Source: Rhodosorus marinus CCMP1338
Lineage: Eukaryota; Plantae; Rhodophyta
Assembly: GCA_029953675.1 (NCBI GenBank)
Contig: JAMWBK010000010.1
Coordinates: 1,054,001 to 1,118,000 of the forward strand
Reading direction: 5' to 3'
Length of the DNA: 64,000 nt
Below are positions 10,518-58,510 of this stretch, piece after piece. The translations under genes and the position numbers were made by a program. The notes under the pieces were generated by a model. It did no database searches. It saw only the letters and a list, made by a program, of their open reading frames with translations, and was not told where the DNA came from. Position 1 is the first letter of the stretch, and every line of letters starts with the position of its first letter.

Positions 10518-12566
10518 ATGGCTTGCAACTGTTTTGTGCCGTTTTGTGTGTCTGGCCTGGATCTAAGGGCAAGGCACACACTTTGTGCGGACCAGCGGGG
10601 CTTTAGTCCCGCGTCCGTGAGGAAGCGATGCAGGATTGCGATGAACAATGGTCTGGAGGGAGAGATAATCAATGCAGAAAGGCTGCTCAAACGAGGCCAA
10701 AGTTCGGCAGCGCTTCAGAGTGTGAGGAGGCTTCGTGAGTTTGGAGTAGATTTGAGAATATACAATCGACTTCTCAACGTCTGCGCAGAGAACCGGAACG
10801 TTCACGTCGCCGATCAGATTCTGCAACTAATCAGAGCTGAAGGCAAGGAATTGGATGTTATTAGCTATACGACACTGATCAAACTGTACGTGCGACGGAA
10901 GATGATGGGTAGGGTCGGAGAGGCACTATCCTCAATGCGATCCAAAGGAATCGTGCCAAATATTGTCACGTACAACACCGTTCTCCATGGGTTGCGTAAT
11001 GGTACAGACGTGACCGGGGCTGCGCTGAACATTTTAGCCGAGATGAAAGCTCAGGGAATTAAACCAGATGTATCGACATATTCGTCCATCATAGCAATCC
11101 ATGCGAGGTCCAAGAATCTGGAGGGAGTCTTGGAAGGCATCTCCGAGATGAAAATCAATGATCTTGTCCCCGATGAAAGGCTTTATTCCAAGTTGGTGCG
11201 CTCCTTTGCCCGGGACAGGATGCGCGAAGAGGTTGAACGGCTACTTAAGATGATGAAGGACGATGGGACAGAAGTTGATGCTTCGGGGCGCTGCGCGCTT
11301 GTTCGCCTTTACGCCTTGAAAGGGGATGAACGTGCCGTGAGGAGCATTATGGATATATCTATGACGTCAAGTGCAAGCTCGGCAACGGCATCGTTTAACA
11401 GTGCTCTCATCGGATTCTGTGAAGCAAACGACATGGAGGCCGGCGAGAGGTTCTTCAAGGATATGCGCGACCAGATCGCCATGGATGCATATTCAATTTC
11501 TGCAGTGGTCCGTCTGTGCTCTATGGACGGAGATGCATCGAGAGTAATGAGAATATTCAGAATGATGAAGGAAAGAGGTGTGCTACCAGATCCAGTGGCA
11601 TATAGCAATGTCATCGATGCTCTGGGGAGACTGGGTGATGTAAGGGGGGCTGCGGAAATGTTTTACGAGATGCTGGATCAGGGTATGAAGCCGAATATTA
11701 TAACGTACAACATCCTTCTCAACGTTTTTGCTCGGCAAGGCGAGGTTGAAGCTATGAGACAAGTGTTCAGAAGGATGCAGAGGGACAAGATCGTTCCGAA
11801 CCACGTGACGTACACAACTCTAATTGCTGGTTTTGGAAGAAGTGGAAACGTTGCCGGTGCGGAGAAGCTAGTTGAACAGATGGAGAGTAGAAACTGCCGG
11901 CCCAATGTGGTCACTTTCACTGCGCTCATGAAGTGCTATGCTGACACGGGTGACATCGATGGCGTCGAGGCGACTCGACAGAGAATGCTCGAGCGAAGGG
12001 TCATTCCAAACTTTGCAACGTATAATGTCCTGATAGATGCTTACGGCAAAGCGGGCCAGGTTGAGCGAGCCGAGAGCGCGTATCAGGATATGATCTCTGC
12101 TGATGTGCTGCCAACGGTTGTGACATTCACAACAATGATGAACATGTACCAGTCAGCAGAGAACCACGAAAAGGTTTCGGAAATGTTTGATCTGCTTGTG
12201 AGCATGGGTCTAAAGCCGGGTTTGGTCTCCTACAATCACCTCATTTACGCGTATGGTCGCGGAAGCGACCCAAAGAAAGCGGAGGATGTTCTCCAGCTTA
12301 TGCGAGAATCTGGAATACGCCCGGATGTAGTCACCTACAACTCGTTGATTGCTTCGTATGTGCGATGGGGACTGGTAGACAAGGCAACAGATGTTCTGGA
12401 GAGAATGGAGGAGGAAGGTGTGGAGGCCGATCATGTTTCGTTCTCAACGATATTGTGTGCGACCAGGAACAGAGAAGACTCGAGCGCCGTAGCACGCTTG
12501 AAGGACATGGCGGCAAGCAGGGGCTGCTATATAGATGAGGATCTGTGTGCAGTGGTAGAGTACTGA
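10518..12566 (+). CDS. Pentatricopeptide repeat (PPR) protein (alternative start 10431)
   Basis: Intronless ORF with about 15 canonical P-type PPR repeats (PNIVTYNTVL, PDVSTYSSII, PNIITYNILL, PNHVTYTTLI, PNVVTFTALM, PDVVTYNSLI). N-terminus MACNCFVPF is transit-peptide-like. Confidence 0.95.
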   Translation: MACNCFVPFCVSGLDLRARHTLCADQRGFSPASVRKRCRIAMNNGLEGEIINAERLLKRGQSSAALQSVRRLREFGVDLRIYNRLLNVCAENRNVHVADQILQLIRAEGKELDVISYTTLIKLYVRRKMMGRVGEALSSMRSKGIVPNIVTYNTVLHGLRNGTDVTGAALNILAEMKAQGIKPDVSTYSSIIAIHARSKNLEGVLEGISEMKINDLVPDERLYSKLVRSFARDRMREEVERLLKMMKDDGTEVDASGRCALVRLYALKGDERAVRSIMDISMTSSASSATASFNSALIGFCEANDMEAGERFFKDMRDQIAMDAYSISAVVRLCSMDGDASRVMRIFRMMKERGVLPDPVAYSNVIDALGRLGDVRGAAEMFYEMLDQGMKPNIITYNILLNVFARQGEVEAMRQVFRRMQRDKIVPNHVTYTTLIAGFGRSGNVAGAEKLVEQMESRNCRPNVVTFTALMKCYADTGDIDGVEATRQRMLERRVIPNFATYNVLIDAYGKAGQVERAESAYQDMISADVLPTVVTFTTMMNMYQSAENHEKVSEMFDLLVSMGLKPGLVSYNHLIYAYGRGSDPKKAEDVLQLMRESGIRPDVVTYNSLIASYVRWGLVDKATDVLERMEEEGVEADHVSFSTILCATRNREDSSAVARLKDMAASRGCYIDEDLCAVVEY

Positions 12567-15988: not shown

Positions 15989-18900
15989 TCAATAGTTGAT
16001 ATACTTAGGGCACACCTTCTTGATAGTTGGTTCGAGCTTCAGATCGAAAGCAACGCTCTTGAACAAAGCCCTCTCTTTCTCGTAGCGATGAACCTCGACT
16101 GCAATCAGGTTCGATCCTTCCCTTAGAAGGCCATTATAAATTGTCATTCGGAACTCTTCGAACTTGTTCTGCTCGCCTTTGGCGGTGGCCAGAGACTCCG
16201 CAATTGGGGTAGTACTCAAAAGATTCTTGGATAAAACTCTTACTCCGTTGATGTAGGCAATAAAACCGTCTCCATAGCGGAGCTTCAAAGACGCATTCGG
16301 CCCCTCAAGACATTGAATAGCGTCCCCGGAGACGTTAAACGTCTTCCTGAAGTAGTACGAGATGTGACGGTGCTCAAAAATAGTATTCAACTTCGGCACC
16401 GAGTAACCAAATGCTGCCCTAGCCGTCTTCCAAGTGGAATCATCAAAATCATCGCCTCGGAAACTCTGACTAATTGTAGTTGCCTGTACCCCTGTGAACG
16501 TCTCGTCTGTGTACTTCCACTCCTCTTCCCCACTGACAAGTTTACAATGCCCATAGTGGCTCTGCGAGCAGGGACTGACCGCTTTCGGGATGGTATAGTC
16601 CCTCCGAATTCGAAGAGCACTGGGACGGTTCGTCATAGGGCCAGCTGGAAGTCTCACCCGTCGGTAAAAGTCGTCACCCTCGCAGTAGTCGTAGAAGAAG
16701 GGCGTTCCCGCAGGGTAGGATACTTCCCCCCCGCGGCATGGGGCCAGGAAAAAGTTTGGGTTGTCCTCTTCACCTTTATAGTTTCGGTGGTTTTGCTCGA
16801 ACAACAGATCGACTGTACCACTACATGCACCTTCACCGTCCTCATAGTCAATGACGAACTCCTTCGGATACCCCTGACTTGAGGCCAAGCTCACAATGTA
16901 GGCTCTGCCACCAAGAACGTTGAAGTGGAAAACCTCCTGTTTTCGGACGGCCTTCAACTTCTCGCTAGTGGATTCACCTCCATCTGAAAGCCTCGTCAAT
17001 TTCATCGAATACGTGCTGCCGATGTTTGTCGGAATGGCAATTGAAATGCTTCGCTGACATGTGTTTGGACAGAAATTGGAGTAGCTTCCTACCATTACAC
17101 AGCTGTTCGTATTGCGGCTTTGCTGCACGAGCTCTGTAGGGGTCACGTAGCCGCTCCTTCCCCCGAACAGATTTCCGCCCTCGATTCGAATTGCGTAGAA
17201 ATCGAAGCGCCTGTCATTGGCGGTAACAGCGCTGTCAAAGTTGAAAACGTTCGATTGATCGTCCGCGAAGACTCCTATCATTGCAGTCGACGCTCTGAAG
17301 AAGCCGGTTTTCCTCGGGTTTCCAGTATTCATCGAGACCAGCGGATGGCTGCAGTCGGCAAACTTGTCCAGGCGCAAATCAATGAACTGAGTACCGTTCT
17401 CTGTCGAGCTATCCTTCCGACTTCCTTGCATGTCGATAGCTCCGTTCAACGGACAACGATTCCAGGTGTCGCTCTTGCCAACAATGACAGAGTCTCGAAA
17501 TACGAGACTGCTTGTTTCTCTGAAGAAGATTGCAGAATCTCGGTTGTCCACAAGAAAAGCATTTTCAATGACTAAGTTTGTACTTTCGTGCATGAACACC
17601 CCGATCCTATTCCTCCATCCGAGATAGTCCTTGAATACAGCCTGCTGTAGTGGTCTGTAGCCATCTGGATAAGTCTGGAACCCGAAGCCATGGTTGGAAT
17701 GCGCTTCATTCGCCACAAACGAGCCAAGCTCAACCGCTTGTGGATTGAGCCCTTCGTACTCTGGTCTTTCCTTTGATACTCCAGTGACGAATGTTTCCAG
17801 TTCGTACCAGATTCCGGCGAGATCTGATCCCGAACACACGTTGTATTCCACGATGTTGTTAGGGTTAGAAAGCCAGAACATTGATGGCCTGTTGTCTGTT
17901 TGCTTTCTTCCGTCTTTGACAATCAAGTTCTCCTGTACAAAGTTTCGGAACCCAATATTCCTCCTCATAATGTTGCCAACTTCCACTCCGTCCTCGAGGA
18001 CCAAACCGTGCCCGACAATGTGGTGGAAGACGTTGTCCTCCGCGAGCACGTTATCAGTTTGGTGAATGACGAGCCCCCTTTGCAGTCCGTTGTAAATCGT
18101 ATTGCTACTGAAGGAAGATCCTTGCTGATCCCCGCATAAATGGAAGTGCATCGGGTATTTGCCGAGCTCTCCTTCAATTCCCAAGCCGACAATCTCTACT
18201 CCATGAATGGTCTGTGTGTCGAGTGTCTCGTGTATTTGCATGTGGCCTCCATCCTTGCTGTTGCTCTCTCCAATCTCGCTGCTGATGGTAATATCTCGAC
18301 TCAGCAAGCCAACCTCTCCGGCGAGACTGACCGCCTTCCCGTTCTTAGCTGTCACCTGAACTTCCAAGCCCGAATGTTCATAGTTCAGTGCCATGTCAAT
18401 GAATATTTCTGACGTCTGGCACCCAGGTCCACAAGTAACCGCCACAATAGTTGCCATTTCTGCTTCCTCTTCGCTCTCTCCTGTTGCTGAAATCACAATC
18501 CGCATCCCCGGCTTCCAGCACTGGATGACGTCACCTTCCACAACGATCTTATTGGTTCTTCTCGGCACCGTCCGAGCAATCTTAGTCCACGTTTTTTTCA
18601 TGCATGCCTCTCCTCCATGTACGCCGTACATGCGGACTTGCCCCCCGACTAGGGCGAAAGTCCTCTTACCGAGCTCCACACTTTGGCCATCTCTGGTGTA
18701 GCTCAAGGGCTTCCCTTCCGTGAGCAGGAACGAGACCTTCTGACCATCCGTGTGCCCCTCCTCCGCTCCAACATCGAGTCGTCCCTGAACAAGAATGTAG
18801 TCCGCCAAAATAGTGACGTAGGAGGACGGCGCGATTCGCAAAAATCCATTTATTTCCAGGCTTCCTAGTTTCGGAATCCGTTCCGATGTTATCTCAACTG

Positions 18901-19096
18901 CAGTTCCACAGGGGACAAGCACGTCATCCCCAGGCGCAATGCTTCCGTACGTCTCCGCGACAAACTGACTCCATGGGATATAGCTGCTGGTTGAATCCAG
19001 GTACAGAGCCGAGTTGCATGGAAGTCGTCCGAAAATTGCGCTGGCGTTTCCAGCCAAGAACAGAATCAGGATGCCCAAAACCACTCGCAGTCTCAT
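15989..19096 (-). CDS. Secreted G8-domain / parallel beta-helix protein (CEMIP/TMEM2/fibrocystin-like) with C-terminal beta-sandwich domain
   Basis: Intronless, 1035 aa, signal peptide MRLRVVLGILILFLAGNASA. G8 motifs (LGSLEINGFLRI, ILVQGRLDVG), VGLLSRDITI, GGHMQI, LGKYPMHFHLCGD, PbH1 repeats (GLVIHQTDNVLAEDNV, GHGLVLEDG), FWLSNPNN. C-terminal YFRKTF..YGDGFIAYINGVRV..NLIAVEVH. Confidence 0.9.
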   Translation of the reverse strand: MRLRVVLGILILFLAGNASAIFGRLPCNSALYLDSTSSYIPWSQFVAETYGSIAPGDDVLVPCGTAVEITSERIPKLGSLEINGFLRIAPSSYVTILADYILVQGRLDVGAEEGHTDGQKVSFLLTEGKPLSYTRDGQSVELGKRTFALVGGQVRMYGVHGGEACMKKTWTKIARTVPRRTNKIVVEGDVIQCWKPGMRIVISATGESEEEAEMATIVAVTCGPGCQTSEIFIDMALNYEHSGLEVQVTAKNGKAVSLAGEVGLLSRDITISSEIGESNSKDGGHMQIHETLDTQTIHGVEIVGLGIEGELGKYPMHFHLCGDQQGSSFSSNTIYNGLQRGLVIHQTDNVLAEDNVFHHIVGHGLVLEDGVEVGNIMRRNIGFRNFVQENLIVKDGRKQTDNRPSMFWLSNPNNIVEYNVCSGSDLAGIWYELETFVTGVSKERPEYEGLNPQAVELGSFVANEAHSNHGFGFQTYPDGYRPLQQAVFKDYLGWRNRIGVFMHESTNLVIENAFLVDNRDSAIFFRETSSLVFRDSVIVGKSDTWNRCPLNGAIDMQGSRKDSSTENGTQFIDLRLDKFADCSHPLVSMNTGNPRKTGFFRASTAMIGVFADDQSNVFNFDSAVTANDRRFDFYAIRIEGGNLFGGRSGYVTPTELVQQSRNTNSCVMVGSYSNFCPNTCQRSISIAIPTNIGSTYSMKLTRLSDGGESTSEKLKAVRKQEVFHFNVLGGRAYIVSLASSQGYPKEFVIDYEDGEGACSGTVDLLFEQNHRNYKGEEDNPNFFLAPCRGGEVSYPAGTPFFYDYCEGDDFYRRVRLPAGPMTNRPSALRIRRDYTIPKAVSPCSQSHYGHCKLVSGEEEWKYTDETFTGVQATTISQSFRGDDFDDSTWKTARAAFGYSVPKLNTIFEHRHISYYFRKTFNVSGDAIQCLEGPNASLKLRYGDGFIAYINGVRVLSKNLLSTTPIAESLATAKGEQNKFEEFRMTIYNGLLREGSNLIAVEVHRYEKERALFKSVAFDLKLEPTIKKVCPKYINY

Positions 19097-31771: not shown

Positions 31772-32987
31772 AAGCGGAAACGCGAAAGCTCTCCTGCTTG
31801 CTATCCAACCCTACCATACGATACTGACACTCCACACACACGCACACACACACACTACAAACACACAAGCTCGTGTCAACAGGAATTTGAAAAGCAGGAT
31901 AATATGGTGCAAGCAGGGCACGCTCCGGGGACAAGGATTGCAATCGATCCTCCTGATCACACCGAAAAGTTGAAGACCTGTACCGCCGCGCATCTGAGCG
32001 TTACAGATATATCCTCACTACAACAAAGCGCGCTGCTGGAGAAAAATTCCATTAGATCTTAAGCCTCAAAACAGATCCAGCGATGATTGTGCTCTGTCGC
32101 GAAGAGCTCTCTTATCGTTCCCTGTAGCAAATCGTTTCTACTCGTAAAACGCAAGTGACTGTCACCTCGTTTATCAAAAAAAAAAGCGGACTTCAAATCG
32201 CTCCTAAAACGTTTGCACATCCGACAATCCTAAATTAGCTTGTTGGACAAGGTATCTGAACGTAATATAGAACTGATAGTTCATATATTTGAATATTTTT
32301 ATATTCTGACCACCTATTTTTAATACAAAAAGCATCCAAATCAAGATCTTGAAGTATCTAAATGGCCGGAGCAAATCGTTTGGAGAAAACTGGGCAGAAT
32401 CCGCCTCGAAAAATTATTGAAATTATGAAACTGGAGAGTTTTTTATAAATATTAATGTGTTTTACATAAAACAAATTAATGAATTAAAATATATTTTGGC
32501 TTAAGTGGGGTTGAAGAGCAAAAAAATACAAAACTTATTGGGGGATTTTTACCCCCTAGATCTAATTGTGCAATCAACCCGAATTTAATATATTACGCTA
32601 AAATTGTAAATATATTATTCTAATATATATTGAACTACCCCTTAGAATATGTTTTCAGCAAAAATCTCGGTGGATTTTTCTCAGCAAAAAAAGGTAAAAA
32701 GTGCTTTTGGTATTCTAAAAACTCATTCCTTTCCTCTTTTTTTCTGTACAGCCTTTTTTTGAGCAGTTCGATATAGAAAGGTGCCTGCTCGATTTTGGAT
32801 CGGTTTCGATGTGGTGCGATGGCGGTTCGTATATGGTGTGAGATTGTGGATCGCAGGGGGTGGGGGTAGGATGTTGAAGAGAGGAGCATCGAAGGGTTTA
32901 GAGTCTCCGCTTCTGTGAGAGGTGGTTTTATTTTGTCAAATCTTTGTTTGTGTGGAAGTGTGTGTGTCTTGCTTCATCCTGGTCAAG

Positions 32988-34685
32988 ATGAAGTTGGATG
33001 TGCTCCTGTTCTTTGCCATTTGGGCAATTGCTCTGAGCAGCGTATCCGCCATCTCGTGCGGGTGTGCAAACTATGAGCTGGAGGTTGCATACAGGTGGGT
33101 TCCGGGGAATGATACAGACTATCCCAGTTCAGCCCATTTTTCTCCAGGAGTGGTGTCAATAGCGACCGCGCCGAGTATGTTTGTGCCCGGCGACACGTCC
33201 TCTGAGGGACTGCGGGACTTGGCAGAGTTTGGCTCCACCAGTCAGCTCGTGAGTGAGCTGGGGAGTAACAGTGATGTATTCTCCTCTGAGACCGTCGCTG
33301 GAACCAGCATTGGTGATGGTGTGGGAGATGTTAGCACGTCAGGACTTGTTTTCGCTTCTGACGGTTATGAAGGACCTATATACTTTTCGTTCGCCTCCAT
33401 GATTGCACCTTCTCCGGACTGGCTGGTTGGACTAACGGGAACAACGAATGTATGTGACGAGAGCACTGGAGAGTTTGTCGATATGGAGAAAATGCTGGCG
33501 CCCTACGACGCCGGCACGGATGGGGGCTCCACGTACACGGCGGCCGACGATCCCTTGGATCCATGGGAACCGATCAGAGTCGCTGAACCTCCATCCGAGA
33601 TGGTGATCGAACAGTATGGATTCCTAAACTTGCGGTTCACGAAGACACTCTGCCCCGGACAGACGGCTACACCGAGCCCCTCGGAGACAGCCACGGAGAA
33701 TCCTACTGTGAGCCCTCCTCCAAGCTCAACAACGACTAGCACGCCCACTGTAGCACCTACAGCAACCCCGACTGAAACTGCGTCTGTCGGCCCTACTGAG
33801 ACCCCGACTGAAACGGCTTCTGGTGGCCCTACTGAGACCCCGACTGAAACGGCGTCTGGTGGCCCTACTGAGACTCCGACTGAAACGGCTTCTGGTGGCC
33901 CTACTGAGACTCCGACTGAAACGGCTTCTGGTGGCCCTACTGAGACTCCGACTGAAACGGCTTCTGGAGGCCCTACTGAGACTCCGACTGAAACGGCTTC
34001 TGGTGGCCCTACTGAGACTCCGACTGAAACGGCTTCTGGTGGCCCTACTGAGAGCCCGACTGAAACGACTTCTGCAAGCCCCACTGCAAGCCCCACTGCA
34101 AGCCCCACTGCAAGCCCTACACCAACGGCGACTCCAGTTTGTTTCCCAGGTGACGCCGTGGTTTCCATGGAGGATGGTAGCAAGAAACCGATGACATTAC
34201 TTGAGGCTGGTGATAGGGTCCTGGTGGCTCGCGGTAAGTTTAGTGATGTTTTTGCGTTCGGGCACAAGGACGCTACGGCTGTGGCAGAATTTGTGAGGAT
34301 TGAAACAGAGAGTGGTCATGCGGTCGAGCTGTCCAGGTCTCACTACATTCTCATTGCTGGCAACCTTGTTCCGGCCAGAAAGGTTCAAGTAGGAGATGAG
34401 CTAACAATCGCTGGCTTTGCTAAATCTCCTGTGAGCTCCACCTCGATCGTGCGCCGTTCTGGATTGTACAGCCCTCATACTTTGGAGGGAACAATTGTTG
34501 TGAACGACATCGAGGCTTCATCGCATACGGAAACCGTGAAACCCTTCGTTGCGGACTTGCTCCTGATGATTCCTAAGCTCTTCTATCGCCTAGGACTCAA
34601 GGAACCGCTTGGATCCATGCTGTACGGATCGACACCGGGCTTACTGCATTCTGCTCTCAGGAAGACCGGTATATCCGCTGCCTAG
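32988..34685 (+). CDS. Secreted Spondin_N + Pro/Thr/Glu mucin-like stalk + Hedgehog-type Hint (Hog) autoprocessing protein
   Basis: Intronless; signal peptide MKLDVLLFFAIWAIALSSVSA. Spondin_N motifs (DYPSSAHFSP, SMIAPSPDWLVG, PYDAGTDGG) are followed by the repeat stalk. Hint block A is CFPGDAVV, block B LSRSHYIL, block F GLYSPHTLEGTIVVN, and a C-terminal SRR-like amphipathic segment follows. Confidence 0.92.
   Translation: MKLDVLLFFAIWAIALSSVSAISCGCANYELEVAYRWVPGNDTDYPSSAHFSPGVVSIATAPSMFVPGDTSSEGLRDLAEFGSTSQLVSELGSNSDVFSSETVAGTSIGDGVGDVSTSGLVFASDGYEGPIYFSFASMIAPSPDWLVGLTGTTNVCDESTGEFVDMEKMLAPYDAGTDGGSTYTAADDPLDPWEPIRVAEPPSEMVIEQYGFLNLRFTKTLCPGQTATPSPSETATENPTVSPPPSSTTTSTPTVAPTATPTETASVGPTETPTETASGGPTETPTETASGGPTETPTETASGGPTETPTETASGGPTETPTETASGGPTETPTETASGGPTETPTETASGGPTESPTETTSASPTASPTASPTASPTPTATPVCFPGDAVVSMEDGSKKPMTLLEAGDRVLVARGKFSDVFAFGHKDATAVAEFVRIETESGHAVELSRSHYILIAGNLVPARKVQVGDELTIAGFAKSPVSSTSIVRRSGLYSPHTLEGTIVVNDIEASSHTETVKPFVADLLLMIPKLFYRLGLKEPLGSMLYGSTPGLLHSALRKTGISAA
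33791..34117 (+). repeat. Coding tandem repeat: 8 x 36-bp (PTETPTETASGG) then ~3 x 12-bp (PTAS)
   Basis: CCCTACTGAG units start at 33791, 33827, 33863, 33899, 33935, 33971, 34007 and 34043. Confidence 0.95.
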
Positions 34686-38842: not shown

Positions 38843-39442
38843 CTATTCTGCGCTCATGCACTCTACATCAAGCCTACATACTACAATGTCGGGTCCGGCA
38901 GCGGTTCTGAGTTCGCAACCATCGCCGGCTGTAGTGACCTCGGCCCTAACCGTTTTGCCATCTTCTCTCCTGAGCATGGCGTGTGCAATCCAATATAGAG
39001 GGGAACCATCACAACATCCCGCGTCGTCTGTCAATATCTCGTTGTGGCAGATATGCAAGCTCAACTCCGTCAAAACGGTGTTAGCCGGCAGGCCCCTCTT
39101 CGCCAGCACCTTCCCAACGTTCCTCCGGTTGGGGTACTCCACAGGTTCACGGATGAGCTCCTTCTTCGAGAAGATCCCCCCCCTGATGCTCACTAAGGGT
39201 AATCTTTTCGAGTCGAAGCGCATCCGAATGCACGGTAACCCGTCCGATCTTCGAGCAGTCGAAAAGAAAACAGTACCTTCCGATGTGTTATTGTTCTTGA
39301 AAGCGAACTTTGAGGACACTCCGGTGTCCACGGTGTCAACAAACAGAAAGGTGCTGTCAAAAGCACCTTGACAGGTCTGGGTCTCCCCGGATACCAGGCA
39401 GAGGAAACCCACCGCAAAACAATACCATGCCAAAGACTTCAT
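38843..39442 (-). CDS. Secreted Cys-rich protein of unknown family (paralog of 41714-43093)
   Basis: Intronless ORF, ATG at 39442 (open to a GTG at 39544), signal peptide MKSLAWYCFAVGFLCLVSG. It shares C.R..F, R.GIFS, RR, IC...I, CC...L, A.A and C.L.V.C with the 41714 protein. Confidence 0.8.
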   Translation of the reverse strand: MKSLAWYCFAVGFLCLVSGETQTCQGAFDSTFLFVDTVDTGVSSKFAFKNNNTSEGTVFFSTARRSDGLPCIRMRFDSKRLPLVSIRGGIFSKKELIREPVEYPNRRNVGKVLAKRGLPANTVLTELSLHICHNEILTDDAGCCDGSPLYWIAHAMLRREDGKTVRAEVTTAGDGCELRTAAGPDIVVCRLDVECMSAE

Positions 39443-39550
39443 TTCGTTCACAAGTCTAGTTCTTAGTGGGAGTACGATAGGCTCAACCGACGGATACCAC
39501 CAATAAACACCAAGCAGGAGGAGGAACAAGCTAAAGATCCTCACTCGTGC

Positions 39551-41713: not shown

Positions 41714-43093
41714 ATGTTAAGAGGTATCACACTCGTTGTATTGAGTCTGACGTTGTTGGGTTGCGTCGAATGTTGTGTTGTGAGATGCGACCTTAAAACA
41801 TGTGATCTAGTGCCCGCATTCACGCGATTTGCTTCGGGTATCTTCAATGCGGATTTGGTGGACAAGAACGGCACAGCGCTAGGAGGTATCGAGCTGAGTG
41901 TGGTGGAGAAGGCCGACAGGAACTGCTTTCGGGCGGTTTTTACAACGGTGGAAAATGTTGGTCTTGCGCAGCTCAGGGTAGGAATCTTCTCATCGGCAGA
42001 TGAGTCGCCACCCACTGGACGGGATAGATTCACAAGGAGGAGGGATTTTAGATTCCCGAGGACGACGGGTGTTTCTGGAACCGAGATCACAACGCTTCGA
42101 AAGGGTCGTATAGACATCTGCCCCGAAGACATCTCCGTGGAGGAGTCCAAATCGTGCTGCGGAGAGAGCTTGTTTGATTTGTACGCATATGCTGTGGTCG
42201 TTGTGAATGGAACGCGTGTGCGGGCATACATGAAGCGGCTTGAGGGCTCAACCGTCCCATGCAGAGTGCCAGACCCCAAGAAACCGTTCCGGGAAGTCTG
42301 CACCCTAGAAGTTACCTGCAGCAACAATTGCAACACGGATGAATGCTCGCTCGGAGAAGACTGCGTTCTGCTTGACGAATTTTCCGAAGCGAACTGCGGA
42401 GCTGATTCGGTATTTCGAGCCGCAAATCGCTGACGATGGCCTCTAAACCAATCTTGAAGAGGTTTATCCCTTTCTCGGAGTCCTAACTCTGCAAGTTCCT
42501 GTTGTTCTGTTTAGATTGCTGTTGCGGACACCCAGAACCGGCAATGTATTTGTAAGAAACTTGACTGTGGCACAGAAGCGAATTGCATTGCAGATCGTGC
42601 CTGCATGGATGTCACGATATTTGGAAGATCATGTCCTCCTCGCTTGGTGTGATAAAACTCTATTGCAAGCTCAACATCGAAAACGGCTGTAAATGTCAAA
42701 TGGACGAGGCTAATTCCAGACTGTTTGGTGCTTTTTGTTTTCCAGATTGGGCAGAACCAAAATGGGTTCTGTAGATGCATTATCCCTTGCTCGAACGTCG
42801 AATGCGTGATGCCTGGGTCTAATGGCCAGCCTTTCTCCTGTCTATCATTCGACGAAGTTATCGAGCTCTTTTGCTCCAGGAGGGATTGCACGAACCGTCG
42901 AAATGTATGTATAGAAATGACAATACGCGTTTTTCATATGAGGACTTTTATCGTTGATACTCCAGCGTAGATATCGGATCGCTCACGTTTTCCTCCTGTG
43001 CCATCCAATTTGTTTCACACGCGATAGAGAGTTATTCGCCAACAGCATAACGGGACTTGTGCCGTGAGTTCCACTCCCGTATATCCCTTTTAA
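41714..43093 (+). CDS. Secreted Cys-rich protein (same N-domain family as 38843-39442) extended by exon-encoded Cys modules
   Basis: Exons 41714-42409, 42515-42646, 42746-42904 and probably 43028-43093, all with phase-0 GT-AG introns (branch-like CCTAAC/GCTAAT in introns 1 and 2). Signal peptide MLRGITLVVLSLTLLGCVEC. The last exon is less certain. Confidence 0.75.
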
Positions 43094-44092: not shown

Positions 44093-46029
44093 GAAGGGCT
44101 GTTGTGCAAGGGGAACCTATAGCGGGGAACCTATAGAGGGATCATAGTGCGCGCACTGCAAAAGGACGTTGCTTTGAGGAAAAGCTAAATGCCAGAACTG
44201 GTTCTCCCAATGAACAAATCATCAAGAAAACGATCGCCGTGCGCCTATTTCATGTTGGCCTTACATTTAGAGATTAGCCCTGAAAGAAAACCATATGCTA
44301 ATCAGACTTTAAATCACCCCCCTGAAGAAATCCTTTTCACAATCTTATTGTGCTAGCATACCTCCCTGTGACTGTTCCCATTCCACACTATTTTCTTGGT
44401 AAATAAATTTCTATAGGAAACATCTTGGATATTTACCTTCGCTCATCCCGTCGCTGCCAAACACCATACGTTTTCAAAAAAATTCAGATGGGGGGGGGGA
44501 AGCGCGAGTTGATCTTTTGCTTTCGCTTATCTTGTAGCGTTTGCGAAACGTGGAGGTTGCATCAGCCAGGACAAGTGCAACGGGTGTAGCTTAGGTAGTG
44601 AACCCCCACTCACTCCCTTGAACAGCTTGAGCTTTGCCTCTCAAACATTTGGCCGTGGAGTAACTTCGTTAACGCCCGCAACAGAGCAACCCTTCCCAAG
44701 CTATACCAGCTTGAGTGTCTCTAAGCAAAGTGGAACCCCGCGGTTCACGGGACTGAGGATTTTGCCGGATTAGAAGTGGGACTAGTTATGGAACCCTACT
44801 CCAAAACTGCATTCAAAAAAGAAAAGAAGCTGAATCAAAAGAATTTAAGTAGAAATCCCGAGCGAAACTCGATTTCTACCCACCCCTCAACATCATATTT
44901 TAAAACAAAGTACAGGCTCGAGAATCATTGAACAGGTCAAGCTGACACTGATTTCCTCCCTTTCCCACCACCCCACCAAACCCCCCCCCCTCTCCCTCAT
45001 CCCCCCTCATCCCCGCTTAGGGCGAACAAGAGTAATGTAGCCAAAATCAATATTTTCTTATCCGACTTTTACCGCTCCAAACTAGTCAATACAAATGTTT
45101 TCAGATCCCCATCCCGAAGACTATTTATTCAATTTTAATCGTCACCTTTCGTTCCCCACCATAATCCAAAATCGCAATCCCTACCAAAAAAGGTATCTAA
45201 AACAACAAATAAAAAAGACAATCATAAAGATCGAATTTGAAACTGCTCAACCATTACCCCCCCCCCTCCTTTCCTTTCTAGTTTCCATATGTGTAAAAAA
45301 ATTAAACAAATCAAACTAACCCCCCCCCCCGCCAGAAACAAAGTCTTGACCTCAAGAAACCGCAAATCTGTAAACATATGAATATTTATATACAAAACTT
45401 TGAATACCGAGACAGCTGTCTTAACGTATCTTTTCTGTCGGGATGGCCCCGTTGTGGAGCCCGGTTCAGCGATTAGGGCGTTCAGGATATGGACTTTTTT
45501 TTCTCTCTTTAATTGGAGACAATATTTTTTTTTATTTACTCATTGTGTTCTGAAAAATGGAGCAAAAGGAATTTTGTTTTTGTTTGGTTTGAATAAATGG
45601 ACGACCAATGTTACCCTCCTTTTTTCTTTTAACTAAATAGGTTTTTTTGTTGATTTTCTCTCCCTCGCGCCCGCGGGCCAGGTTCTGTAGAATATTGGCG
45701 GATGTTGCACATAGCGAGAGACGGAGGAGGAAATGGTTTGTTTTGGAAGGTCTTCATTTTAGGCTGTTTGCTGTCTGTTTGGTTATTTAGGGTGATGGAC
45801 TGATGTAGTTGCCGTGGGCAACCGAAGAGATGGAGTTTGGGGAGGTGAAGCATGAGCCTTTTCAACGAGGTGGTGTTGAATGTGTTTTGAGCTTTTGGTT
45901 GACCTGATGACTTGACGCGTTCTCGCTTTTGCAGGAAGTAGCGCTTTAGGTTTTGCACCGTGAATCTCGTTCATGGGGCTTGTTCGATAGGATCCTGAGG
46001 GAGAGGCCTTGTAGATACTGCTTGTGAAC

Positions 46030-49000
46030 ATGGAGCCGGAGAACGGCTCCGGATTGAGTGTCGGCAATGGATCGCCTGGTGATGAAAATCTTGAAACCAG
46101 TCGTGCAAATAACAGCACGGCGAGTCAGTTGCATACATCCTTTTCACCTGAGGCCGAAAACAGTACAAAGTCAAACTTTAGCTCGAGAGCCCCTACAGGA
46201 AGATCGGATGCGGATTTCCAGAAGAGCCGAGGTTCATCGTTTGGCTCAAAGGTTTTGAGTAAAGTTTTCTCCTCATCAGAGGTTAAATATGACGTGAAGG
46301 GGGACGATATTACGACGAAGAAGGGCGTTTTCGAGTATCTTTCGACATTTCTTCTCGATGAGGATATGCAAGAGCGCTTGCAGCTCACCAGACGAGCCTT
46401 TGTTTCTTTGGGTAAGTTGCAAGACACAATCCAGAAGGAGCACTCCCATGGCCCTTTTGACGCTTGTTCCACGAGAACCTTTTGACTCATGGGTAGCCTT
46501 TCCTTCTCTATGACAGGTTTGTTCACAATCGTGACATGCATTATCCTGTTCTTTGCGTTCTTCTTCGCAAATGGGAAATGCAGCACCTCAGCGGTCCTGA
46601 CATTGGAACCAACTGGGGAGAACTGTACTACAACATTGTTTTCTCAGACTGCCGATTTTGAGCTAGACACGAATGGCGTCTTTAGAGGGCAACCAAACTT
46701 TGTTCTGAACCAAGGACTGCTCAAAGTCAAGTTGAAAGGCTACGAGGGAAGCGACGAGGAGTTTCTAAGGGACTTGGACCAGGCTTTATCTTTGTTAAGA
46801 GAAGAAACCGAAAGGGTGGGGAGCATGGACGCGGTCCGTACAATGCAGAGGCTCCTTCATGTAGAAGGGCATCTTCCTGATAGACACATGCTTGTTGAGT
46901 GGAACATTGACCCTGGCAACCTACTACGATCTCAGTTTGATCGGATAGAGAATATCGTACTCTATCGGGGACAAGAGGAGTTGTCCATAATCGATAACCC
47001 TGCACTTTGCACGCATGCTTTTGAGAGGGTCTTCATATCAAGCGCTCCCATTCTTCCAAACTCGGCGGAAAGCTACGCCACTGTTCGCATTAAGATTTCC
47101 GCGAATCCCGCTGAAGACAGTGCTCTCGTGGAACCCCCCGTGTGGAGGGTCGGCGAAGGGGTGGACTCGTGCGAAGCCGATCTGGAGCCGAGCAGGGAAA
47201 CCTCTGATGCGTTTGGAAGTATTTTGGGGTTTTTTAGCAGGAAACAGCTGTCCACTGATGAAGAAAGCTTCATACTTGCTTTCGACGTGCTTCAGGTATG
47301 TAACACTAATGTTAAATGGCTTTCGACTTGGGAAGTTCCTAGCTAACCTCCTGGAATTTCCCTAGACCTACACTATTTCCCAATGCAACGAGGAGGGCAG
47401 TGAGACCTGCGATATCGAATCGACCACTTCTGCCGCTGGCTACGAGCTGTTTTACTCTGACGCTCTTGGTGAGATGGACCTGACGTTGGATTTTCCACTC
47501 AGCTCGCGATATTTATTCTTATGCCTGCCTTCTGCTCTTCGTCTCGTAGAGAAACATGCTTTTAGGGACACGATTATTGTTGAGGAGGGGGATGAGAGGC
47601 AAATTATAGTTGTTCCCGAAATTGGCCCTCACCCGGGGATTCCGGAGTGCAATCAGTGCGTAGATGCTTCTACTGACCCGTCAATCGCTGAAATTTGCCA
47701 AAGAAATGTTGCCGTACTGCTGAAGTACTACGAAGTGGATGCGGATGAGCAGCCACAGTATGTACAGTCCGCATATTTGGTTCTGAGAACGCGAGACATT
47801 TGGAATGCGAAATATGGGACTGAGCAAATTCACTGTGGCGTTGAGGTTCGTATCCTTACAGCTGTGATGTTCTTAGGGCTTCAATTTCGAATTCTGCTGA
47901 CACTGTACTTTCTGATGCGATAGAATCTGTTGAGGCCAATTGATGTCCAGAGCGATATTACAATCCCCTTCGCGACTTCCTCCGGTGTGTTTGAGTGCGA
48001 CGTGGTCGTTTGCAAGTCCATTATTGAGCGCCTTGGTACAGCAGAAGCAGTGGCCGAGTTGTTTCTAATTCTTATGTTGGGTATCATTGCTCTGCTGTAC
48101 ATTTGCGTGACTGCCTATAAGAATCTCCCGAGATCAAAACGAGGCATACTGTTTGGAGCCGTTAGTGAGACTTTTGCTTCAGAGGAGATTAAGGAGGTTA
48201 TGGGAAAGAGCTTAGGCCTTAGGATTGCGATCTCCATCGCACTAATTGCGGCTGTGATCGCGACGTTTGTCTGTTTTCTTGTGATACCGGAAACTTGTCG
48301 GCCACTGGAGACGCTGAGCTTTGAACCCCAAACTGACAATAGTGCGTTTATCGTCTTCATCCTCCACAAATTTGTTAACTTGTCACGTTATAGTTGCTCT
48401 TACCGTGATCTTCCCCACGCCTATTTCCAGACGCGAATTGTACGGAAGTTTTACTGACCCAGAACCGAGAGTTGGTCCTTGACAACAATCAGAACTTCGC
48501 TAATACTCCAGGTTTTTCGCCTGGCTCAGCTTTTCACACGGTACTCTTGCGGAGCTACAGCACTGACAGTAGCGGCTTTAGTGAAGACCTTCGAACGACA
48601 AAAATCGCTCTTAATGAGGAATTGTCTGCGACAGACGTAGATCAACTGGATTCTATAGTCAAGCACGAGTTGCTGCTATTCTCGTCGGCCAACCCAGTCC
48701 AAGGTGTCACAATGAGGTACAACTTTGAAAACCTGGCTGCGGGGTCAATTTCCAGCCCTGGGTCGGTAGATGTTCTCGTACGGGCCGGGGGTGACGGGTG
48801 CTATGCGGCGTTGGAAACGAACCTGGAATACGGAAGAATTGGACTCCTCAGGAGAGAATCTCCGCTGCTAGGATTCTCTATACGAGAGGTCAGGAGCTTC
48901 TTCGACGTAGATCAGACGCCTTTTAACCCATGCTTTGAAAGTGATGGAGCTTTTCGGGAAGCTCTGGACACTTTAGTTGCAGACTTTGAACGGGTATCTG

Positions 49001-51279
49001 GAGGAAGTTCACCTTTTCGAATCGACATATTCATGGCGGATTTGATTCTTGTGGACGCATGTAATCGTCCGCAGTACGCAGAAGTGTGCCAGAATGAAGT
49101 GGCACCTGGTAGAGCGGATATTGTCCAAATAGCGGACGGTCGATTCGGACTTGTCTGGCCCACAAACGTTGACTTTGTCGGAGTTGCGGAACTCGTTTCC
49201 GAATGTCCGCAGTGCTCTGCTGCCGCTTTTGATATCTGTGATCGATTTGAGCTGACGGTGAACTTGGTGGACAAAGAAACCGGAGCAAGCCCGTTTGAGA
49301 TATTATTCAAGTTTTCAACTGAGCTGCCATTGAACGGCCTTGGGACTGTCTCTACGGAGAGGTGCTCAGTGCAAGACGTTCTCCTTGACCAAGAAATCGC
49401 ACTGGACGCGCCCTTTGAAACGACTAGCGACCTGTACTCGTGCCAGTATGAAGTGTGCAGCTCCTGGATAAGTAGGGTGGGAACATCCTTCGCCGACACA
49501 GACTTCATTCTCGAGCTGGTTGAGATTGGAATTGGGATAATTTTCCTGATAGTGGGCCTGAGTGCTTTGAGTAGCTGGCGTGGACTTGTAACGAAGACAC
49601 TGCCGAGCAAGACTCGAAACTTCTTGACGATCACATGGGCGTTTTTGATTGGGGCGTTCTTGCTGCTGGCATTTGTGGGGTTGTTCGCCGGTTTTTTTGT
49701 ATTGAACGGTGAATGTACGACAAGTACAACCCTGACTGTGCAGGAGACAGGCGATTCATGTGACCAAGTGATGCTGAGGCAGGACGGCACCTTCGTACTA
49801 GACACAAACGGTCGCTTTAACAGGGAAGCTGGGTTTAGTGGGCGGAACGCTCTGTTCCAGCTCCAGTTTCGTGGCTATAGAGCGACGGAAACTGAACTCC
49901 GGGCATCTGTATCTACCCTTCTGACGTCATTTCGGGAGCTCCTAGAATCTGTTGAGGGGACGGATCTCATCAATGTGTACCGGACGCTCCTATTTAACCC
50001 CGTGAGTGTGCCTGGGAAGGAAGGGTCAATAGCGATGGCCGCCAACATCAACAACCAGTTCTTCGCTCGATGGGTGAATGTCGAATCAGCCGAGGCAAAT
50101 TCCGACCAAGGAAGCTTCCCTCTTGAGGCAATCTGGTTCACTGATGAACAGAAAACCACAATTGACACAGACCTGGATCAGTGCACCAGTGAATCGTCTG
50201 TGGTGAGAGCTCGCGTGACTGAGGAGGAAGTGGAGACACTTGTTAAAGTGATTACCATGGAGAAGAGTGCAGTTGCGCTAGAGCCGAACACATGCCTGAA
50301 CAGTGGCTTGACAGACACGTTTGAAGGAACCACGGTCCTCAGGAGCTTTGTTCCATCAACGGATACTACCAGCAGTTTCGAAGAGACGGACGATCTCCAC
50401 GTCAGTTTCGACTCTGCCCAGGTTTTCGGGCTTGATTTTTGCAACAAAGATCCGAGCAACTGCGAGAGCCGAATTCGACCTCCTGAGTCTATTTCCGAGG
50501 GTCGGAACACGGTTACGATCCCCGCTTCTTGGGAGTTTTTCAGGTCCTTGTACGACGAGGAGTCGGGATTGTACGGGTTCAAATGGGAAACTGGAAGCAA
50601 CGTGGATGCTAGTGGAGAGGAGAGGAAGTTTTTCGTAGTCCCGAACTGGAGCGTTCCCAGAGGTTGCGAGTGCGAAAACCCGGATCGGATCCAGAGTTGT
50701 TCGAAGCAGATCAATCTTGTCCTTCAGTATTATACCCTGGCAGAAGGCGAACCGTTGGAATACGTAACGAGTTTTGCCAAGAAGATTGACATGACTGGAC
50801 TATGGAATTCAGTTGGGTCGGGCAGCAGCTTGCATTGTGACCTCAGCGTCATGACGGGCGCCCTCGGGGACGAGGAGATTCGCGCCATATCGGAGGGACC
50901 GCTGGCTCAGTTTGAGACGGACTTGCAAATATTACAGTGCGAGCAAACTCTTTGTGTTGCCGGGGTAGAAAGATTTGGTGACTCCTACGCGTTGGCGAAG
51001 TTGATCATTGTCTGTCTGACTTTCGGCGTCGTTTTCGTCGTACTAGTCCTGGAATTTCGATCTACCACGTCTAAGAAGGACGCACAACCGGGAACTATGG
51101 CGTCAGCTGACTCAGATGTAGAGAATATCAGCGGTGATTACATCGACCAAGAGAACGGGGATGGGGAATTGCATGAAGCGGATGACCACATATCACCTGA
51201 AACGAGTGATCATGTCGTAACCTCCGTCTCGGTCCCAAATCGAAGTGGGGTAACGAAGTCTGTGCGGATCGTGGACTAA
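46030..51279 (+). CDS. ~1608-aa six-TM protein made of three homologous TM-ectodomain-TM units (unknown family; trimeric-channel-like topology)
   Basis: Exons 46030-46411, 46517-47295, 47366-47468, 47550-47845, 47924-48341, 48431-51279 (4827 nt) give consistent intron phases 1,0,1,0,1. The three units share post-TM1 C..L....C....Q....LD.N..F and pre-TM2 F.T....C....C....R.G motifs. Confidence 0.88.
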
Positions 51280-52434
51280 ATCCAGCAGCGAGCTGCTTGA
51301 ACATAACTTCCCAGTCTGTGGGAATCGTGCACATTGGCTCTTATGTTTTGATATTTCAACTTTGGGCCTACAAACATGTTACATAAAAACTTTTGAATGC
51401 AGTATTTTGGGAAGAATGTGTGTTGTTCACTGGCTTATGCCCATTTCACACGCGAAGCAACTCTTCTCTCCCACTAGCAGAAACGCGTTCATGCGTTGCT
51501 GCTCTCAAAAAAGCGGCGGGCGGAGGGTTGACCGGCTAATCAGCCTCGCCTTCTTTGGGCCCATAGCAGATTTTATCCCCGATTTGATCATGTGACACTA
51601 CTCTCTGCACAAGAATTGAATTCAGCGACTCTGCTCTTCGACTTCGTTGCTGGCTTTCTTTCTTAGTCCTCGACCCTGCCAATTCTGCTCGCCCTCATCA
51701 AACGATTTTTCAATGCCGAATGTGGCAAAAAGCCGGATTCACGCAGTTGATTAATTTTCATTTCCTTTTCAATAGAAAACATTTCCTTTAAATCTCACAA
51801 TAATTAATTTTGCAGAAAAATTTATTAACTTTGACTACTTCACTTTCCTCGAGTTTTAGTACAATTATGGTAACCACATTGATCCTTGATTTTGATGTCA
51901 TTTCCTTTGAAAGTTTGGGAATCATTTGAAAATGTGGGAATTAATCCGCGGTGATTTCAATTGAGTGGTGAAATCCATGCAGAAGTTATTTAATTCGATA
52001 GACCACTAGGCAACGGTGAGTACGCGGATGAGATGTAGGGCACGACTGCACGGTTTGGAAGGGGAGAAGTACTGTGCATTTGGGGTCGAAAATAGTGAAA
52101 GCATGCAATATATAGGCCCCCGAACCAGAAAAGATTCCCCATGCATATTTTCTGGCAGGTTTAGATACTGCGGACCGGCTTAAACCTCTGTGATTGCCTA
52201 TTGAACAGGAAAGGAGCTTGTGAGTTTTGCCTCGGACCCTGGAACGCCTTCTTGAAGCAATGAATGAACTCATTTGTTCTTGTTGGATCACGTCGAACAG
52301 AGTGCTCAAGAAGCTACCCATTGCTCGTTTTATTTTTTGTTTTTTTTCTCTGTGCAGGGATACTTCTACGCAGTACACCACGGGAGGAGAAACGACGTTG
52401 TGCGATACGATTCTGAGACTCTCTCGGCAGTTAT

Positions 52435-54963: not shown

Positions 54964-56317
54964 CTAAGTGAATTCGAGCTTTCTCTTGGTCGCAAACTGG
55001 CTGCTGGGCGGAGTCGATCCATCGTCTTTTCGACACGCGGTCCCCGGCGCCCTGAAAGGCGATGCGTTGTTACTCCTGTCTTTCTGGTCCGGGTTAACAA
55101 TCGGGGTCTCGTTCTTCGTGAACTTCTTCAAAAGATCCGCTGCGCTCGAAGGCGGCGGGCCAGTGGTGAAGTAGGGATGCTTCAGAGCGTCCGCCGCGCT
55201 GATTCGTTTCAAAGGATCAAACACCAGGAACTTGTTTAGCAGGTCTAGGGCCTGCTCTGATGCAGCCGTGAAGAGTGCCCTGTGATCCTGTGCTGGGACG
55301 TGCGAAAACTTGACATAGCCTGGAAGGGAGGACATTCCAGGCCATATATCATCATCCGGAGTGCCGCGAGCATGAAAAATTTTCACCAATTGATCGATTT
55401 CGGAGTCACCCGGAAGATAGGGCACTCTGAGCATGAGCTCAGCAAACACACATCCAACAGCCCACATGTCAATTGCTGTGCCATACTGCCGGGCTCCGAA
55501 TAGGAGTTCTGGAGCTCTGTACCAGCGGGTGACAACCTGTTCGCAAGTACAGCAAGTCAGTTGGAATGCTTCTTATAATGGCTGCCTAGAAGAGCATTCT
55601 CCGGCGATTTCTATTCTTCTGGAGAACGCACAATGTGGGTCAGTCTAGGGTTTGGGCTTCCATGTATACGAGCAAGACCGAAATCCGCAAGCTTCAGGTT
55701 CCCATCTGTCCCGAGGAGTATATTGTTGGGCTTTAAATCTCTATGCAGCGTCCAGTGCTTGTGACAGGCTTCAACGCCCCGAAGAATCATCTGCAGACAT
55801 CCCTTAACCTCTGCCTCGGTAATAAATATCTCTCGGCTTCGGATTACAGCATCCAAATCCGTGAGGCAGTACTCAAAGACGAGATTCACGTTTGTATTGC
55901 TTGAGAAAGCGTCTACAAGCTCCTGTGAAAGCGTTTTTAAAGACCGAACTGTCAATAAATCTGGCCTAGAGCAGTATGGTTCAGCGAAAAGGTCCTAAAA
56001 TGTTCTCACAATCACATTTGGGTGCTTAATCTCCTGTAGCAGCTTAATCTCTCTTAGAGCTTCCATTGATATGCCATCCTTGGCCTTACCCTACACAATT
56101 CAAGTGAAAACAAAGACGGGCAAGCTTTCCTTCAAAACAAAAATTCTTTCTCGGCAAAACTAACAAAACAAAAACGCACGCCGTGCTCTTCGCAGCTTAC
56201 CATTCGAACTTTCTTCACGGCAACAATCCGACCCGTACCAACATCCTCCGCTTGTGTTACAACACCTCCCGCACCTTCTCCGAGCTTCTTAATGTTCTTG
56301 TACTTCTTCGAACTCAT
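54964..56317 (-). CDS. CDK7: Cyclin-dependent kinase 7 / CDKD (CAK, TFIIH kinase), multi-exon
   Basis: [64 protein letters not shown]|[41 protein letters not shown]. Confidence 0.93.
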
Positions 56318-57595: not shown

Positions 57596-58510
57596 ATGGC
57601 ACTCTCTGGTCCATGTGTGGTAGGGATCGATGAGGCTGGTAGGGGCCCTGTACTGGGGCCCATGGTGTACGGCGCAGCAGTGTGCGAAGTAGACAAGCAG
57701 GATCGGCTTCGTGATCTTGGATGCGATGGTAGGATCCTTTTACTATGTCAGAGGGGTTCTGATTCTTATAAACCTGCTTAGCCATCTTTCTGAAAACCCC
57801 CTTTTCGCCTTCAAGATTCCAAGGCGATGAGCGAGCAGGACAGAGAGGCGGTGCGCGATCGTCTCCGAGATTCAAGCCTAGTTCAGGCCTACACAAAAGT
57901 TTTGCAAGCTGAGGAGTTGAGCAGATGCATGCTTCGTAAGCGGCCATACAATCTGAATGCGATATCACATGACACGGCTGCTGGATTGGTCAGAGAAATC
58001 CTCAAGGACGGCATAGAAATCGAGCACTTGTACGTTGATACGGTCGGCATACCAGAAAGGTATGAAATCTGGCTGAGGAAAGCGTTTCCAGCGATAAAAG
58101 CCATAACCGTCGCGAAGAAGGCAGATAGTACCTATGCCATCGTCGGGGCAGCAAGCATATTTGCGAAAACGCTTCGTGATCACATCCTGCGATTCTGGGA
58201 TACCCCGGACCTTCATCCAGAGCTTCGAGGAAACTATGGAAGTGGGTATCCTGGAGATCCGGCAACAATCAGCTGGTTGAAGAGAGCGGTAGATCCACAC
58301 TTTGGCTTTCCTGGGCTGGTCAGGTTTAGCTGGAGCACTTCAAAGAACCTCTTGGACGCAACTGGTGCGGTCCAGGTTGAGTTCGAAGAAGAGGATAGCG
58401 AGGCAAATCAGAGCAATATTCTCAACCACTTCAAGCGAAAAACAGGGAAGGAACAACTTCCAAAATATTTCTTGGACAGACGACTTTGCGAAGATAGTAA
58501 TTTTCTTTAA
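57596..58510 (+). CDS. RNASEH2A: Ribonuclease H2 catalytic subunit A (2 exons; alternative start 57524)
   Basis: [18 protein letters not shown]|DSK across intron ~57729-57815, [52 protein letters not shown]. Confidence 0.96.

Follow-up and report, generated by a model that had tools for sequence, protein, structure and literature searches.

A three-unit, six-helix membrane protein of a red alga, assigned to an undescribed algal family of two-transmembrane proteins

Channels of the DEG/ENaC/ASIC, P2X and PAC groups assemble as trimers of separate chains, and the CD36/SCARB/LIMP-2 proteins act as ligand or lipid receptors, not as channels. Tandem fusion of subunits is familiar from the K2P, TPC and NaV/CaV channels, in which subunits that are separate elsewhere were joined and then diverged, fixing their stoichiometry and order; one-, two- and fourfold forms coexist among voltage-gated-type channels. 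We know of no fused threefold example. Here, we analyzed a window of 64,000 nucleotides of Rhodosorus marinus CCMP1338 (assembly GCA_029953675.1, contig JAMWBK010000010.1, forward-strand positions 1,054,001 to 1,118,000; all coordinates below are those of the window), in which a gene at 46030-51279 on the plus strand encodes a protein of three diverged units in tandem. Each unit consists of a first transmembrane helix (TM1), a Cys-rich ectodomain and a second transmembrane (TM) helix (TM2). As judged from sequence comparison, this unit defines an undescribed family of algal proteins, whose members contain one, two or three copies of it.

The window has a guanine-cytosine content of ~48% and short GT..AG introns, which mark it as eukaryotic nuclear DNA. 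Joining six exons of the plus strand gives an open reading frame (ORF) of 4827 nt and a product of 1608 aa, the same numbers that had been put forward in the original prediction, made from the letters of the sequence. Exon 1 (46030..46411) supplies the start codon, the N-terminal tail in the cytosol (aa 1-126) and the opening residues of the unit 1 TM1, and exon 2 (46517..47295) contains the remainder of this helix and the first half of ectodomain 1. Exons 3 (47366..47468) and 4 (47550..47845) encode the parts of ectodomain 1 with the C-N-x6-C motif and the VVPE...C..C...C motif, respectively. Exon 5 (47924..48341) runs from the end of ectodomain 1 through TM2 of unit 1, a 38-aa linker and TM1 of unit 2 into the start of ectodomain 2, and exon 6 (48431..51279) takes in everything else, from the remainder of unit 2 through a 28-aa linker and the whole of unit 3 to the C-terminal tail with its stop codon. 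The introns measure 105, 70, 81, 78 and 89 nt in order, all bounded by GT..AG, and both unit junctions lie within exons, the first (aa 585-622) in exon 5 and the second (aa 1037-1064) in exon 6.

The six-exon model is right because two independent sequences, both derived from transcripts, agree with it. The first is a 1602-aa protein (P0001) from the MMETSP0315 transcriptome of Rhodosorus marinus (Rhodophyta, Stylonematophyceae), which is collinear with the six-exon product at 89.8% identity, its only gaps amounting to 5 residues close to the N-terminus and a single one close to the C-terminus. Its N-terminus matches the product of exon 1, and it contains the peptide RRAFVSLG|LFTIV that spans the junction of exons 1 and 2. 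The second is a 5229-nt complementary DNA (cDNA) contig from a JGI sample (L001; ~91% DNA identity to the window gene), which covers every exon in order from the 5' untranslated region (UTR) at 45853 to the 3' UTR at 51412, aligning to 45853-46413 over exon 1 and to 48431-51412 over exon 6. The earlier claim of a single gene with its unit junctions inside exons 5 and 6 had come with a proposal to look for cDNA across both junctions; this 5.2-kb contig crosses both, the transcript-derived protein is full-length, and exon mapping agrees. Introns 1, 2, 4 and 5 are removed in the cDNA. Intron 3 (47469..47549, + strand), which at 81 nt is in frame and free of stop codons in the window, is spliced out in P0001, where the 27 residues that it would encode are absent; in the cDNA it is retained (L001 1444-1524) with an in-frame TAA. 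A five-exon model of 1635 aa, reading through 47469-47549, was ruled out by the absence of these 27 residues from the protein and by the stop codon in the cDNA. One messenger RNA carries all three units, with intron 3 sometimes retained. The gene is nuclear, has six exons and is expressed; it comes from a Rhodosorus-like red alga of another strain than those behind the two transcriptomes. We also observed that the retained TAA had led a gene caller to cut the cDNA into two ORFs; retention of intron 3 in the window version would add 27 residues and no stop. Using tblastn, we found no paralogues of the gene elsewhere in the window.

Kyte-Doolittle hydropathy calls six TM helices in the product, at aa 127-145, 566-584, 623-641, 1018-1036, 1065-1083 and 1517-1535, which leaves three ectodomains (420, 376 and 433 aa) and, on the cytosolic side, two linkers (38 and 28 aa). 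Unit 1 (aa 127-584) extends over 46408..48115, with its TM1 at 46408-46569 (interrupted by intron 1), ectodomain 1 at 46570-48058 and TM2 at 48059-48115. It is followed by the K/R-rich linker 1-2 (aa 585-622, 48116..48229) and by unit 2 (aa 623-1036, 48230..49560), in which TM1 lies at 48230-48286, ectodomain 2 at 48287-49503 (interrupted by intron 5), and TM2 at 49504-49560. Linker 2-3 (aa 1037-1064, 49561..49644) leads to unit 3 (aa 1065-1535, 49645..51057), with TM1 at 49645-49701, ectodomain 3 at 49702-51000 and TM2 at 51001-51057, and the plus-strand reading frame closes with an acidic, poorly conserved cytosolic C-terminal tail (aa 1536-1608) and the stop codon at 51058..51279. BLASTP between the units gave E values of 4e-29 for units 1 and 3 (over the full length), 1.6e-7 for units 1 and 2 and 4e-9 for units 2 and 3, at 22-25% identity, and the three units are ancient paralogues of one two-TM unit. 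The Cys count is exactly 12 in every ectodomain, at positions that correspond between units, and the N-terminal tail, both linkers and the C-terminal tail contain no Cys; K and R are enriched on the predicted cytosolic flanks, a positive-inside bias that fits an N-in/C-in orientation. The distribution of Cys and this bias are consistent with a protein whose three ectodomains lie in an oxidising compartment. These ectodomains, of the disulfide type, are predicted to face the outside or an organelle lumen, with the termini and linkers in the cytosol. Homologous TM1-ectodomain-TM2 units on short cytosolic linkers, Cys-rich ectodomains and cytosolic termini had all been proposed beforehand, and each proposal agrees with these results, as do the motifs quoted with them, all of which we found in the units.

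Comparison with more distant relatives indicates how old this arrangement is. A three-unit protein of 1526 aa from MMETSP (P0043) is ~40% identical to the window protein, and its units pair with those of the window by position, at 372, 314 and 372 bits for units 1, 2 and 3, against 33-107 bits between different units. Because the units are orthologous one to one, the triplication predates the divergence of these lineages, since when the three positions have remained different from one another. Unit 3 is the one nearest to the one-unit proteins of green algae, and unit 2 is the most diverged. Against the cDNA contig, the ratio of nonsynonymous to synonymous substitution rates (dN/dS) is 0.19 overall, 0.13, 0.15 and 0.17 in the ectodomains, 0.19 in the TM helices and 0.07 and 0.12 in linkers 1-2 and 2-3, the former being the lowest value in the protein; the N-terminal and C-terminal tails reach 0.54 and 0.32. 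The low values in units and linkers point to purifying selection, with no unit decaying, and the lengths of the linkers are kept at ~40% identity. That the whole is an artefact, whether three neighbouring genes misjoined, a pseudogene or a chance repeat, has a negligible probability. We found nothing in its favour, the sole oddity being the in-frame 81-nt intron that a gene caller could read through, whereas the junctions lie inside exons, the frame runs without a stop for 1608 codons, the entire gene is covered both by a full-length transcript-derived orthologue and by a cDNA contig, and the overall dN/dS and repeat E values down to 4e-29 speak against it. The transcript evidence has already refuted this explanation.

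To place the protein, we searched 1.84 billion representative proteins exhaustively with a HMMER profile of window unit 3 and of units 1 and 2 of P0001 (E<=1e-3). This recovered only 41 relatives, all 'hypothetical protein' or nameless in their sources and lacking any Pfam domain. A word-indexed homologue search returned 2 matches when queried with the full protein, a single one for the family alignment and, for the distant relative P0037, nothing but the query. None of the three window units matched any Pfam model (hmmscan, E<=10), and Pfam gave nothing consistent for 10 relatives or for the 19-member alignment; no match to a known multi-repeat family of non-channel proteins was among the results. 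In the literature, our search turned up no described family and no natural trimer concatemer in algae. One-unit, 2-TM members occur in Mesostigma viride (P0009, P0008/P0052), Acetabularia (P0014) and Neomeris (P0015), and further ones are P0007, P0017-19 and P0021, so that the single-unit homologues in other algae whose search had been proposed do exist. A two-unit, 4-TM member (P0004) has 1143 aa, and its units do not pair with units 1 and 2 of the red algae, which suggests a separate duplication. Three-unit, 6-TM members are P0001 and P0043. The fragments P0005, P0013, P0010, P0011 and P0024, which resemble unit 1, the unit 1/2 junction, unit 2 and unit 3, are all located on one 7814-nt contig and are therefore exons of a further three-unit gene, and P0006 and P0016 mark another multi-unit gene. 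A distant branch matches the profile only over its first ~100 and last ~70 positions; it contains the complete 2-TM proteins P0030 and P0037, and its other matches, including P0022 of Pedinella, comprise the juxtamembrane ends only, with one TM helix or none called.

The motifs of the unit are common to the three window units and 16 other units. The consensus begins with TM1, C-x14-C, Q....LD..G.W, a long helix and a variable middle, and continues with D..Q....D.CN....C, VVP......C..C......C, an HC motif, PF.L..G.Y.C....C...LERLG.A.AN and TM2. Conservation peaks beside the membrane, in the juxtamembrane segments. Across the family, the TM columns keep only their hydrophobicity, and identity to P0043 is 0.32-0.42 in TM2, 0.39-0.43 in the ectodomains and 0.42-0.58 in TM1. 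In TM1 of unit 3, a GxxxG motif of the helix-packing type is kept in 3/3 of the three-unit orthologues examined, and TM2 of unit 2 has a conserved acidic cluster, DTDF.xELxE, at its outer end, with no counterpart in units 1 and 3. Separately, three proteins of Dasycladales (P0031, P0040 and P0027) were seen to contain only the C-terminal stalk 'PF.L..G.Y.C....C...LERL' and a TM helix; in P0031 the stalk follows a head which, by eye, looks like a C-type lectin. This stalk-anchor module is apparently reusable alone.

We then asked what fold the unit might adopt. An AlphaFold2 model of unit 3, built on a 19-sequence alignment, has a mean predicted local distance difference test score (pLDDT) of 72.9 and a predicted template modelling score (pTM) of 0.66, with 61 residues below 50, and shows an alpha+beta ectodomain. 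In this model TM1 (helix 2-32) continues into beta-strands 37-65, and strand 438-448 leads into a 41-residue helix (452-492) that becomes TM2. The proposed comparison of a single unit with the PDB, which we ran with this model using Foldseek, yielded nothing at E<=0.001; the lowest E was 0.096, with TMq<=0.13, and no channel was in the top 50. The best-matching pieces, at noise level, were short (60-90 residues) and hotdog, LpqH, PelC, START or lipocalin-like (E ~0.1). Foldseek likewise found no match at E<=0.001 for unit 3 in BFVD and 0 matches in the PDB for a two-unit model, and PDB sequence searches with one unit and with the family profile returned 0 matches. The two-unit model was made from P0002, a 1125-aa orthologue fragment that comprises TM2 of unit 1 and all of units 2 and 3; with a shallow alignment for unit 2, it has a mean pLDDT of 60.3 and a pTM of 0.39, a value that would be as expected for two folded lobes without confident mutual placement. 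Because no known family passed the tests of membership by sequence and fold, and nothing in the PDB corresponds to the unit model, we file the unit as a new protein family, as had been suggested earlier; 'new' means here an undescribed family, not a demonstrated new mechanism.

The closest described systems resemble this protein to different degrees. With DEG/ENaC/ASIC channels (ASC, PF00858), each unit shares cytosolic N- and C-termini, two TMs and a disulfide-rich ectodomain of ~400 aa, and in the unit 3 model the beta-strands are directly continuous with the TM helices. Yet no ASC profile matched the three window units, the 10 relatives or the 19-member alignment at E<=10, and Foldseek found no match to the palm, beta-ball, thumb and finger fold with our models, which are of moderate quality. 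Furthermore, these channels consist of three separate chains rather than three diverged units in one chain, and the algal proteins differ from them in lacking the HG and GAS motifs, in a TM2 that is not specially conserved and in having relatives with one or two units. Some algae and protists possess P2X receptors (PF00864; PMC3360091). These receptors and PAC/TMEM206 (PF15122) share the two-TM topology and a Cys-containing ectodomain with the algal units, but neither P2X_receptor nor TMEM206 gave a Pfam match among 19 units, a PDB sequence match or a Foldseek match. The algal ectodomain is larger than theirs, of mixed alpha+beta structure and with 12 Cys per unit, and no ATP-site or pore motifs could be aligned in the algal units. 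CD36/SCARB/LIMP-2 proteins (PF01130) likewise have two TMs, both ends in the cytosol and a disulfide-bonded ectodomain of ~400 aa; they consist of a single unit, and we found no CD36 Pfam match among the 19 units and no Foldseek match to the CD36/LIMP-2 fold. The likeness to ENaC, P2X and PAC thus seems to be one of topology only, and the protein is, on this evidence, probably not a relative of ENaC/ASIC, P2X, PAC or CD36. HAP2-type fusogens, tetraspanins and RND/NPC-type topologies were considered and dropped for want of a Pfam or fold match and for their different TM layout. The coexistence of one-, two- and three-unit forms parallels the copy-number series of voltage-gated-type channels, and the algal fusion would recall K2P, TPC and NaV/CaV in its outcome, with the difference that these have pore-loop or 6-TM units and demonstrated pores.

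The topology had led the original prediction to an obligate pseudo-heterotrimeric channel or receptor; as a channel, the three units would surround a pseudo-threefold axis and their TM helices would line a central pore, as a single-chain counterpart of ASIC/ENaC, P2X or PAC. We consider such a channel improbable. The two-TM, Cys-rich layout with cytosolic ends, common to trimeric two-TM channels, holds for each unit, the units are kept one to one in the three-unit lineage, the linkers are short and highly constrained, and the acidic cluster at the outer end of TM2 in unit 2 is conserved; strands continuous with TM1 and TM2 in the model also recall the palm or lower-body design of those channels. 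However, a link to ASIC/ENaC, P2X or PAC was found neither by sequence nor by fold, and TM2 is not preferentially conserved, being no more identical to that of P0043 than the ectodomains are, with only hydrophobicity retained in the TMs. Regular expressions run on every unit and relative detected neither HG nor G[AS]S as a conserved motif, the latter occurring by chance in just two units of P0043, in keeping with the earlier remark that these motifs were not evident. The two-unit relative P0004 does not fit a trimer, the charges at the outer mouth are asymmetric between units, and the two-unit model, with its shallow unit 2 alignment, has a pTM of only 0.39. A constant number of three across the family is contradicted by the one-unit and two-unit members. 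A broader reading, a single-chain pseudo-heterotrimer of a new two-TM superfamily of channels or receptors, in which one-unit homologues would form homotrimers (or hexamers) and a lineage of red algae would have joined three diverged subunits in a set order within one polypeptide, seems to us improbable as well. If true, no threefold assembly of channel type would have been found concatenated in nature before, and the fold would be one absent from the PDB.

Plain TM helices are what one would see if the units were beads on a string, each folding and acting independently, for example in multivalent adhesion or matrix binding or as three CD36-like handlers of hydrophobic ligands, with fusion only raising valency or co-expression. 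The copy number of one, two or three within the family agrees with this, as do the two-unit model without confident packing between units (again with a shallow unit 2 alignment), the stalk-plus-TM module that stands alone behind a lectin-like head in P0031, and the fold hints, which are noise-level wraps of hotdog, START or lipocalin-like type over 60-90 residues. Independent repeats usually differ in number among relatives and stay alike within a protein, but here P0001, P0043 and the window protein all have three, and units that share only 22-25% identity among themselves are each matched by an orthologue of their own. No other part of the protein is as constrained as the linkers, and no CD36 match was found by Pfam or fold. 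We regard independent units as a rather unlikely explanation.

We favour, with a confidence that falls somewhat short of even, the explanation that the three-unit protein represents a hetero-oligomer fused into a single chain, from a new family of two-TM surface glycoproteins that are not channels. A hetero-oligomer with non-equivalent positions is suggested by the repeated fusions, the one-to-one orthology of diverged units and the constrained short linkers. An ancestral one-unit glycoprotein that associated with itself would have been fused head to tail, a step that would be topologically free with both ends in the cytosol, and the three fused positions would have specialised afterwards. The fused protein would then act as a surface or lumenal complex for ligand binding or sensing, which is the most likely role on the sequence features. 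In this complex, the juxtamembrane module, made of the beta-strands after TM1 and the 'PF.L..G.Y.C....C..LERLG.A.AN' helix into TM2, could couple the ectodomains to the TM hairpins and linkers. A sensor or receptor appears more likely than a pore, as TM helices of plain appearance and a conservation peak at the juxtamembrane stalk would suit a receptor or sensor-type complex more than a selective pore; a pore is possible but not supported by these results. Several points weigh against a fused hetero-oligomer. The P0002 model, with a pTM of 0.39 and a pLDDT of ~60 on a shallow unit 2 alignment, gives no direct sign of contact between units, and the one-, two- and three-unit forms fit independent modules equally well. 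With no similar solved fold, its function is inferred from anatomy and conservation only, and a remote fold relationship may be missed by a unit model of moderate confidence (pLDDT 72.9).

The family has neither a Pfam model nor a solved relative, and it is found in red algae, in green algae (Mesostigma and, among Dasycladales, Acetabularia and Neomeris) and in Pedinella. Its series of one-, two- and three-unit fusions argues for units that work together, and it offers a ready system for studying the evolution of hetero-oligomers of fixed order. Should the units form a pore, the protein would be the first single-chain trimer in nature and would found a new class of channels; should they not, they would still represent a new two-TM receptor fold.

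The window also contains several other genes. At 32922-34685 (+), an ORF of 587 aa carries Spondin_N at its N-terminus (E 4e-20) and a Hint module at its C-terminus (E 2e-27), so that in this red alga a spondin-like head is joined to an autoprocessing domain of the hedgehog type. A 1035-aa ORF at 15989-19096 (-) has a G8 domain and a CEMIP-type right-handed beta-helix, and its product is probably a secreted protein that binds glycans or an enzyme that cleaves them. Upstream of the three-unit gene lie two ORFs of ~235 aa without a Pfam match, at 38843-39544 (-) and 41714-42433 (+), with several Cys each and, in the former, a hydrophobic N-terminus; these could be small secreted proteins. Two adjoining, divergent genes at 7414-9648 (-) and 10431-12566 (+) encode pentatricopeptide-repeat (PPR) proteins. 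Ordinary housekeeping neighbours are represented by the C-terminal exon of a protein kinase at 54964-55467 (-), like a cyclin-dependent kinase (CDK) by eye, and by an RNase HII exon at 57827-58510 (+).

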